Assembly: GCA_002269645.1 (NCBI GenBank)
Contig: NIVC01000660.1
Span: forward strand, 186,001 to 250,000
Direction: 5' to 3'
Length of the DNA: 64,000 bases
Source: Macrostomum lignano
Taxonomy: Eukaryota
Below, piece after piece: positions 54,006 to 54,270 of the stretch. A program made the translations under genes and the position numbers. A model generated the notes under the pieces. The model was not told the origin of the DNA. It saw only the letters and a program-made list of their open reading frames with translations, and did not search any database. Numbering within the stretch: the first letter of the stretch is position 1; every line of letters starts with the position of its first letter.

Positions 54006-54270
54006 CATACATGCGCAATCCCCCTGATTTACACTGGCCATGCAACTTACTTTTTGACCAAAAATGCAACTTACTTGTAAAAGAAACCCTAACGCAATTT
54101 TGGGTAAATGGCAGGAGTAACTTGAGTGTCTTATAAGGGCTAAATGCCTCGTCATCTAATTAGTACTATGTCTGTATTCTCTAGGCTGGGCATTTTTATG
54201 ACTTACCCCTGGTCCACCACAATTTACGGTGGCCAGATCGGCCAGGTCGGCCAGCAGTTGCGCATGTATG
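54006..54270 (+). mobile_element. Complete 265-bp MITE (13-bp TIR, 8-bp TSD) carrying a 28S rRNA fragment
   Basis: TIRs CATACATGCGCAA (54006-54018) and TTGCGCATGTATG (54258-54270); TSD ATCTGGAA (53998-54005 and 54271-54278); 28S-like segment at 54102-54163. Confidence 0.9.

Follow-up and report, generated by a model that had tools for sequence, protein, structure and literature searches.

Within a 64-kb stretch of animal DNA (hereafter the window), three copies were found of a short non-autonomous DNA transposon family that generates an 8-bp duplication of its target and carries in its interior about 63 nt of 28S rRNA-like sequence. These copies are probably best accounted for by an ancestor of the family that took up a piece of a nuclear 28S gene, corresponding to helices 69-71, which would since then have been a passive and decaying part of the element.

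One of the copies, B, occupies 265 bp on the + strand (54006-54270) and is bounded by perfect 13-bp inverted ends: CATACATGCGCAA forms the left one (54006-54018, + strand), while the right one (54258-54270, - strand) reads TTGCGCATGTATG on the + strand and is the exact reverse complement of the first at 13 of 13 positions. Outside these ends the 8-mer ATCTGGAA is found at 53998-54005 and again, with 8 of 8 bases matching, at 54271-54278, representing a perfect target-site duplication. Both the coordinates and the sequences agree with the original prediction of a 265-bp element with perfect 13-bp inverted repeats and an 8-bp duplication at this position. Two subterminal direct repeats of TGCAACTTACTT are also present on the + strand, at 54041-54052 and 54065-54076 (overall span 54041-54076). 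The terminal 13-mer, with one mismatch or less, occurs 5 times in the 64-kb window, against 0.08 expected occurrences. All six reading frames of B are interrupted; the longest open stretch is of about 55 aa, and an exhaustive protein search with this stretch returned just two marginal matches, both to junk ORFs derived from tandem repeats. No tRNA-like head was found in the small element, and the two flanks of B, joined to reconstruct an empty site, gave no paralogous match in the window. Inverted ends, flanking duplication, small size and non-coding sequence are the features by which MITEs are recognised, and B is a short non-autonomous cut-and-paste DNA transposon.

The 28S-like segment of B lies at 54102-54164 (+ strand), is about 63 nt long and corresponds to the helix 69-71 region, with 53 of 64 aligned columns identical to the 28S core. 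The presence of about 62 nt of 28S rRNA in the element had been proposed from the sequence, and the 62-nt string quoted for it is indeed found there. Local alignment to 28S gave a score of 78 for B, and the three copies scored 78, 69 and 79 (range 69-79), while shuffled sequences scored about 17, with a standard deviation of about 2.4; all three values lie more than 20 standard deviations above the shuffles, and the proposed similarity to LSU rRNA is clearly above background. Of the 64 positions of the 28S core used as reference, 56 are independently confirmed by the LSU_rRNA_eukarya consensus printed by Rfam. In all three copies the best rRNA match is to the Rfam eukaryotic LSU model (RF02543), at coinciding positions: copy A matches model positions 2255-2310 with 18.5 bits (E=0.014; 52/64 columns identical to 28S), copy C matches the same positions with 10.8 bits (51/64 columns), and B matches positions 2282-2310 with 9.7 bits. 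Besides the sequence equivalent to model positions 2255-2310, the segment includes about 10 nt on the upstream side. At gathering thresholds, the Rfam search over the whole window gave no rRNA match, and the LSU match surfaces only in permissive local searches; scores of 9.7-18.5 are far below the gathering score of 50, as would be expected of a fragment both short and diverged. Attempts to follow the homology to 28S beyond the segment, upstream or downstream and with gap costs set leniently, gave scores that did not exceed those of shuffles. No rDNA was found in the window. The segment is a short, diverged 28S fragment, and not an rRNA gene.

The other two copies share with B the 5' end and the interior. 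Copy A (432 to about 626, + strand) has its 5' inverted end at 432-444 and its 28S-like segment at 521-584; copy C is found on the - strand, from 57757 to about 57514, with the 5' inverted end at 57745-57757, three subterminal motifs and the 28S-like segment at 57563-57625. Mutual identity among the three is 71-76%, and all of them open with the same 13-mer. BLAST-level similarity of A and C to B ceases near position 199 of B, and neither a 3' inverted end nor a recognisable target duplication was found for either of them; the lack of the 3' inverted end in A and C makes B the only complete copy, one of three in 64 kb. Thus, the two additional copies originally placed at 432-632 and, inverted, at 57500-57757 both exist, but they are 3'-truncated, and within the window B alone of the three combines the terminal inverted repeats with an 8-bp duplication. 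Neither BLAST with a word size of 7 nor an nhmmer profile built from the three copies revealed further copies in the window. Relatives of the family outside the window were sought by metagenome pattern scans, by a scan of viral contigs, in a 21.7-kb Macrostomum lignano locus and by a protein-space search with the open frame of B, and none was obtained.

The boundaries of the 28S-like segment are identical in all three copies; moreover, derived changes that set them apart from 28S are common to A, B and C, at positions 12 and 28 of the segment as well as within the core. Common boundaries and common derived changes point to one acquisition in the ancestor of the three copies, and a single 28S capture in that ancestor is the simplest reading of these sequences. 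This supports the earlier proposal that a DNA transposon family captured a piece of rDNA and spread it. The three-copy consensus is identical to 28S at 54 of 64 positions, while single copies reach 51-53 of 64, as would fit independent decay of the copies from one ancestor.

Other candidate copies were considered and discarded. At 42284 and 42318 the terminal repeat is nearly matched, but the interiors there do not resemble the family. A 7/8 duplication that could be assigned to C (TGCCTCTG at 57491) was taken as chance, C stopping about 28 nt before the equivalent of the right end of B, where no inverted end is present. A terminal 13-mer with one mismatch at 54751 prompted the examination of 54751-57757 as a single 3-kb element; this region lacks a duplication (TACATAAG versus TGTCTCTG) and its internal motifs are in the wrong orientation, and it resolves into the truncated copy C and a second element, E2 (54689-56123). 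Beyond its truncated end, C adjoins unrelated sequence in which the relic of a mariner/Mos1-type transposase N-terminus is found (Pfam HTH_48, E=1.2e-6; 57073-57288, - strand, about 230 bp from the end of C); the mariner family is unrelated to the small element.

E2 measures 1435 bp and is non-autonomous and complete; the 8-bp duplication at its borders (54681-54688 and 56124-56131) is perfect and reads CCTGCCAT. Its inverted ends are imperfect and extend for about 62 nt, and its right terminus opens with CATACATGCG, ten bases with which the small element also starts. Neither the 28S-like segment nor the interior of the small element was detected in E2 by nhmmer. The relationship extends to the subterminal regions: E2 contains a 21-bp tandem array of 22.8 units (54945-55423, - strand) and a second 21-bp block of 5.5 units (55843-55957), both having as core the subterminal motif of the small element, TGCRACTTAGTT, whose orientation relative to the CATACATGCG terminus is the same in the two elements. 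With one mismatch or less, this motif has 32 matches in the 64 kb, versus 0.74 expected, all of them in B, in C or in the E2 arrays; copy A has only a diverged version, TGCGACTCACCT, which is below the sensitivity of the TGCRACTTAGTT search. The satellite of E2 looks like a repeat of the transposase-binding type expanded into a tandem array, its two blocks being separated by an insert of about 420 bp. An interspersed repeat of about 100-165 bp, with copies 83-90% identical at about 55684-55838, 5780-5936 and 32340-32438, has one of these copies between the satellite blocks. E2, with like ends and a duplication of equal length, transposed without the 28S piece, which indicates that transposition does not require it; on this comparison of the two elements, the 28S segment is dispensable cargo. 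The possibility of passive cargo, one of those originally put forward, is favoured by the absence of the segment from E2 as well as by identities to 28S that fit independent decay of the copies from a common ancestor.

Assignment of the family to a superfamily can be discussed on the basis of its two complete elements, B and E2, both with a duplication of 8 bp. This length fits hAT, P and several other superfamilies. hAT elements have the target pattern nTnnnnAn and usually start with (C/T)A(G/A)NG. ATCTGGAA fits the target pattern, while CCTGCCAT fits it at position 7 only, two sites being too few for a judgement; the small element starts with CATAC and E2 with CATGC/CATAC, which differ from the hAT start. 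The 8-bp duplication had been regarded as typical of hAT or P: its length does fit both, but by itself it does not assign the family to either of them, since several other superfamilies fit as well, and CATAC speaks against the usual hAT start. The small-element family may be described as hAT-like or P-like. As for the transposase, among the ORFs of the window (16 analysed with Pfam and 46 further ORFs of at least 95 aa inspected by eye) only the mariner HTH_48 relic was found, and no nuclease gene is present near the element.

The window as a whole is rich in tandem repeats. Minisatellite arrays occur at 4768-5940, 8265-9150, 16220-17440, 18456-22200, 28980-30330, 39834-40900, 58537-59652 and 61592-63090, with periods of 23, 20, 24, 34, 27, 9-12, 4 (CTGT) and 30 bp, respectively; they are unusually dense, take up a large share of the window and give rise to numerous long ORFs that are spurious. 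An inverted counterpart of the (CTGT)n block (58.5-59.6 kb) is found at 33581-33885. An intronless ORF of 634 aa (44362-46266, + strand) codes for an amiloride-sensitive channel of the ASC/DEG-ENaC type (Pfam ASC, E=6.5e-68); it has no exact database record, and its only strong database relative is a Macrostomum lignano protein, with 53% identity, which suggests a flatworm related to Macrostomum as the probable source of the DNA. Positions 41548-42042 of the window resemble sequence that lies beside the gene of this relative (15825-16596 there). Probable exons of the host or of transposable elements are found at 2988-10060 (+), 31815-39151 (-), 23084-24061 (-), 48791-49117 (+) and 63570-63998 (+); they include a kinesin motor exon supported by Pfam and, as candidates identified by eye, a GH63-like glycoside hydrolase, a beta-lactamase-like protein (LACTB-type), a retrotransposon gag-like fragment and a myotubularin-related inactive phosphatase.

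The anatomy of the elements suggests how the family would move and how it may have obtained its cargo. A transposase encoded elsewhere in the genome would bind the terminal repeat beginning with CATACATGCG, and probably also the subterminal TGCRACTTAGTT repeats; it would then excise the element and reinsert it with a staggered cut of 8 bp. Deletion derivatives are known to gain foreign sequence as filler DNA when excision gaps are repaired, and the most likely route for the 28S piece is that it was copied as filler of this kind; alternatively, it may have been acquired by aberrant transposition from a copy residing in rDNA. In either case the piece would then have been carried passively, mutating together with the rest of the element. 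Neither the autonomous partner nor the empty site was found within the window.

The second of these routes is part of a broader alternative, according to which the family arose in rDNA: an element in or near 28S would have mobilised the adjacent gene sequence through a cryptic end or by paired-end transposition, and the cargo would be a record of former residence in rDNA, as for Pokey. Pokey and mPok show that DNA transposons dwelling in 28S do gain rDNA-derived modules (PMC10946416, PMC3849761). Moreover, the sequence of 28S just 3' of the captured piece, ACGCGCATGAATG, matches the right end of the element, TTGCGCATGTATG, at 10 of 13 positions, including a common 7-mer, GCGCATG; this likeness may be a microhomology relevant to the capture or a coincidence, and it was spotted post hoc. 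The window holds no rDNA. One-ended capture, however, predicts a piece adjoining a terminus, whereas that of B is internal, separated by 83 nt from the left terminus and by 93 nt from the right one, and the cryptic-end sequence is not retained in the copies. An origin within rDNA seems unlikely, although it is the main alternative to the filler route.

A much less probable alternative gives the 28S module a function: it would either offer rDNA-specific elements (R2-type retrotransposons, I-PpoI-like endonucleases) an ectopic target or decoy, or give rise to small RNAs that match rRNA. Counted from the R2 nick site, the segment runs from about -36 to +28, nearly the full R2 footprint, and the nick position also falls within the 15-bp site of I-PpoI. 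The coincidence with the R2 site becomes less remarkable, partly through ascertainment, considering that this stretch is the most conserved and most recognisable of 28S. The R2/I-PpoI core, CTCTCTTAAGGTAGCC / CTCTCTTAAGGTAGC, is intact in none of the three copies and is altered differently in each of them; the variants of the 15-bp core read GTGTCTTATAAGGGC, CTGTCTTAATGAGGC and GTCTTATTAGGTCA, and such differences from copy to copy leave no visible constraint.

Differences between the three-copy consensus and 28S are not evenly distributed, since they cluster in the 8-nt core AGGTAGCC, where 6 of 8 positions are changed against 4 of 56 elsewhere (Fisher p=7e-5, which becomes about 4e-3 allowing for the choice of window). 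At this point the consensus reads TTAGGGCT (54135-54142 in B), a change, shared in kind by the three copies, that can be read as an insertion of 2 nt together with the loss of TA at the R2 nick site, while the flanks of the core within the segment remain about 93% like 28S. Plain neutral decay does not predict this clustering, which requires some additional local event at the core in the ancestor; it could have been an artefact of the capture junction or of its repair, capture from an rDNA copy that was already damaged, or the scar of a nuclease attack. The position of the cluster, exactly at the cleavage core, also speaks for the functional reading, since it could be taken as a repair scar or as an escape from cleavage. 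Indeed, it can be speculated, with little expectation of being right, that the module was once a working ectopic target for the R2 endonuclease or for an I-PpoI-like homing enzyme, and that the core changes are a repair scar or an escape mutation that enabled the lineage to spread; if so, a past conflict of a DNA transposon with rDNA-homing elements would be recorded in the element.

Most other observations on the segment point in the opposite direction. Identity between copies is 81-90% within the segment and 67-86% outside it, an excess that is unconvincing with three copies. Against passive carriage, the longest invariant run outside the terminal repeat, AAATGCCTCGTCA, lies inside the 28S segment, either by chance or maybe through constraint; conservation statistics of this kind are weak because there are only three copies, two of them truncated. 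In every copy helix 71 lacks part of its 3' strand, and in helix 69 broken pairs are flagged by the Rfam alignments; the segment does not preserve the rRNA structure. All three segments are uninterrupted, and no R2 sequence is present in the window. The suggested part of the piece as a landing pad or decoy, be it for R2, Pokey or I-PpoI, is thus unsupported, as is a small-RNA role: its core is altered in three of three copies, nothing has been inserted in it, and E2 has moved without it. On the whole, the evidence leans against the segment doing anything.

Finally, the copies might be scattered rDNA pseudogene fragments (orphons), or their likeness to 28S might be fortuitous, given that short rRNA-like fragments are common in animal genomes and that the Rfam scores are far under the gathering threshold; this can be dismissed as extremely improbable, since homology among the copies continues past the 28S piece into sequence unrelated to 28S, over about 90-135 nt on the upstream side and about 40 nt on the downstream side, the same 13-mer opens all of them, B has both inverted ends and the duplication, and the shuffle tests exclude chance.

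The reading of a passively carried 28S piece can be compared with systems already described. Miniature hAT elements, such as Mar of Drosophila willistoni, are likewise short and non-coding, with short inverted ends and an 8-bp duplication, and B fits their nTnnnnAn target; conversely, the CATAC of the small element is off the usual hAT start, and no hAT transposase partner was found in the window. Dada-type transposons, which target small RNA genes, duplicate 6-7 bp and insert within those genes; they were considered and set aside. Kolobok elements duplicate TTAA. A link to KolobokP was also rejected, because the small element makes another type of duplication and its copies have not conserved the 15-bp site. 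KolobokP transposons are animal DNA transposons that encode an I-PpoI-like His-Cys box nuclease, and hence have a link to the nuclease family that cuts the same 28S site; for I-PpoI itself a 15-bp site and a TTAA overhang are described (PMC9587614). The host phyla listed for KolobokP do not include flatworms (PMC9587614), and no nuclease gene lies near the small element.

Several mobile elements are known to contain rDNA-derived sequences: a 2024 review includes Pokey/mPok, with spacer-derived repeats, SINEs derived from 5S, Cassandra, Ajax and the mammalian SINE28, derived from 28S (PMC10946416). According to the same source, transposable elements, especially the non-autonomous ones, acquire rDNA modules by reshuffling, and most of these are thought to be without benefit (PMC10946416). 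Pokey/mPok, of the piggyBac superfamily in Daphnia, resembles the present case in being a DNA transposon family with miniatures, in carrying rDNA-derived sequence and in being tied to the same conserved part of 28S (PMC3849761, PMC10946416). However, Pokey has a TTAA duplication, carries intergenic spacer and ITS2 sequence and inserts into 28S, while the present family duplicates 8 bp, bears 28S coding sequence and has its copies outside rDNA. Membership in Pokey/mPok was accordingly discarded, ATCTGGAA and CCTGCCAT both being 8 bp long instead of TTAA. SINE28, the 5S-derived SINEs and the Cassandra and Ajax TRIMs also are mobile elements with rRNA-gene sequence (PMC10946416), but they are retrotransposons, those derived from 5S making use of its internal Pol III promoter, whereas the present element is of the cut-and-paste type and its fragment is without a known promoter; inverted ends, a duplication of fixed 8-bp length and the lack of a tRNA-like head led to the rejection of an rRNA-derived SINE, such as SINE28. 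A further likeness is to the filler DNA of Ac/Ds and P deletion derivatives and to transduplication of the Pack-MULE type, in which an inherited short host fragment lies between intact ends, has no evident function and decays (for the general statement, PMC10946416). The fragments in Pack-MULEs and in filler DNA are usually pieces of protein-coding genes, while here a 28S helix 69-71 fragment is involved.

No DNA transposon that carries 28S coding sequence figures in the table of the 2024 review (PMC10946416), and for this reason the case is worth an entry in repeat catalogues. During the curation of repeat libraries, copies of this kind can pass for rDNA pseudogenes or for contamination, and 28S probes, primers and rRNA-depletion oligonucleotides find in them additional matches outside the rDNA arrays; should copies with an intact core exist, they would also be off-target sites for insertion tools based on R2 or I-PpoI. 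For the family itself, the small element is one more non-autonomous DNA transposon with captured host sequence.
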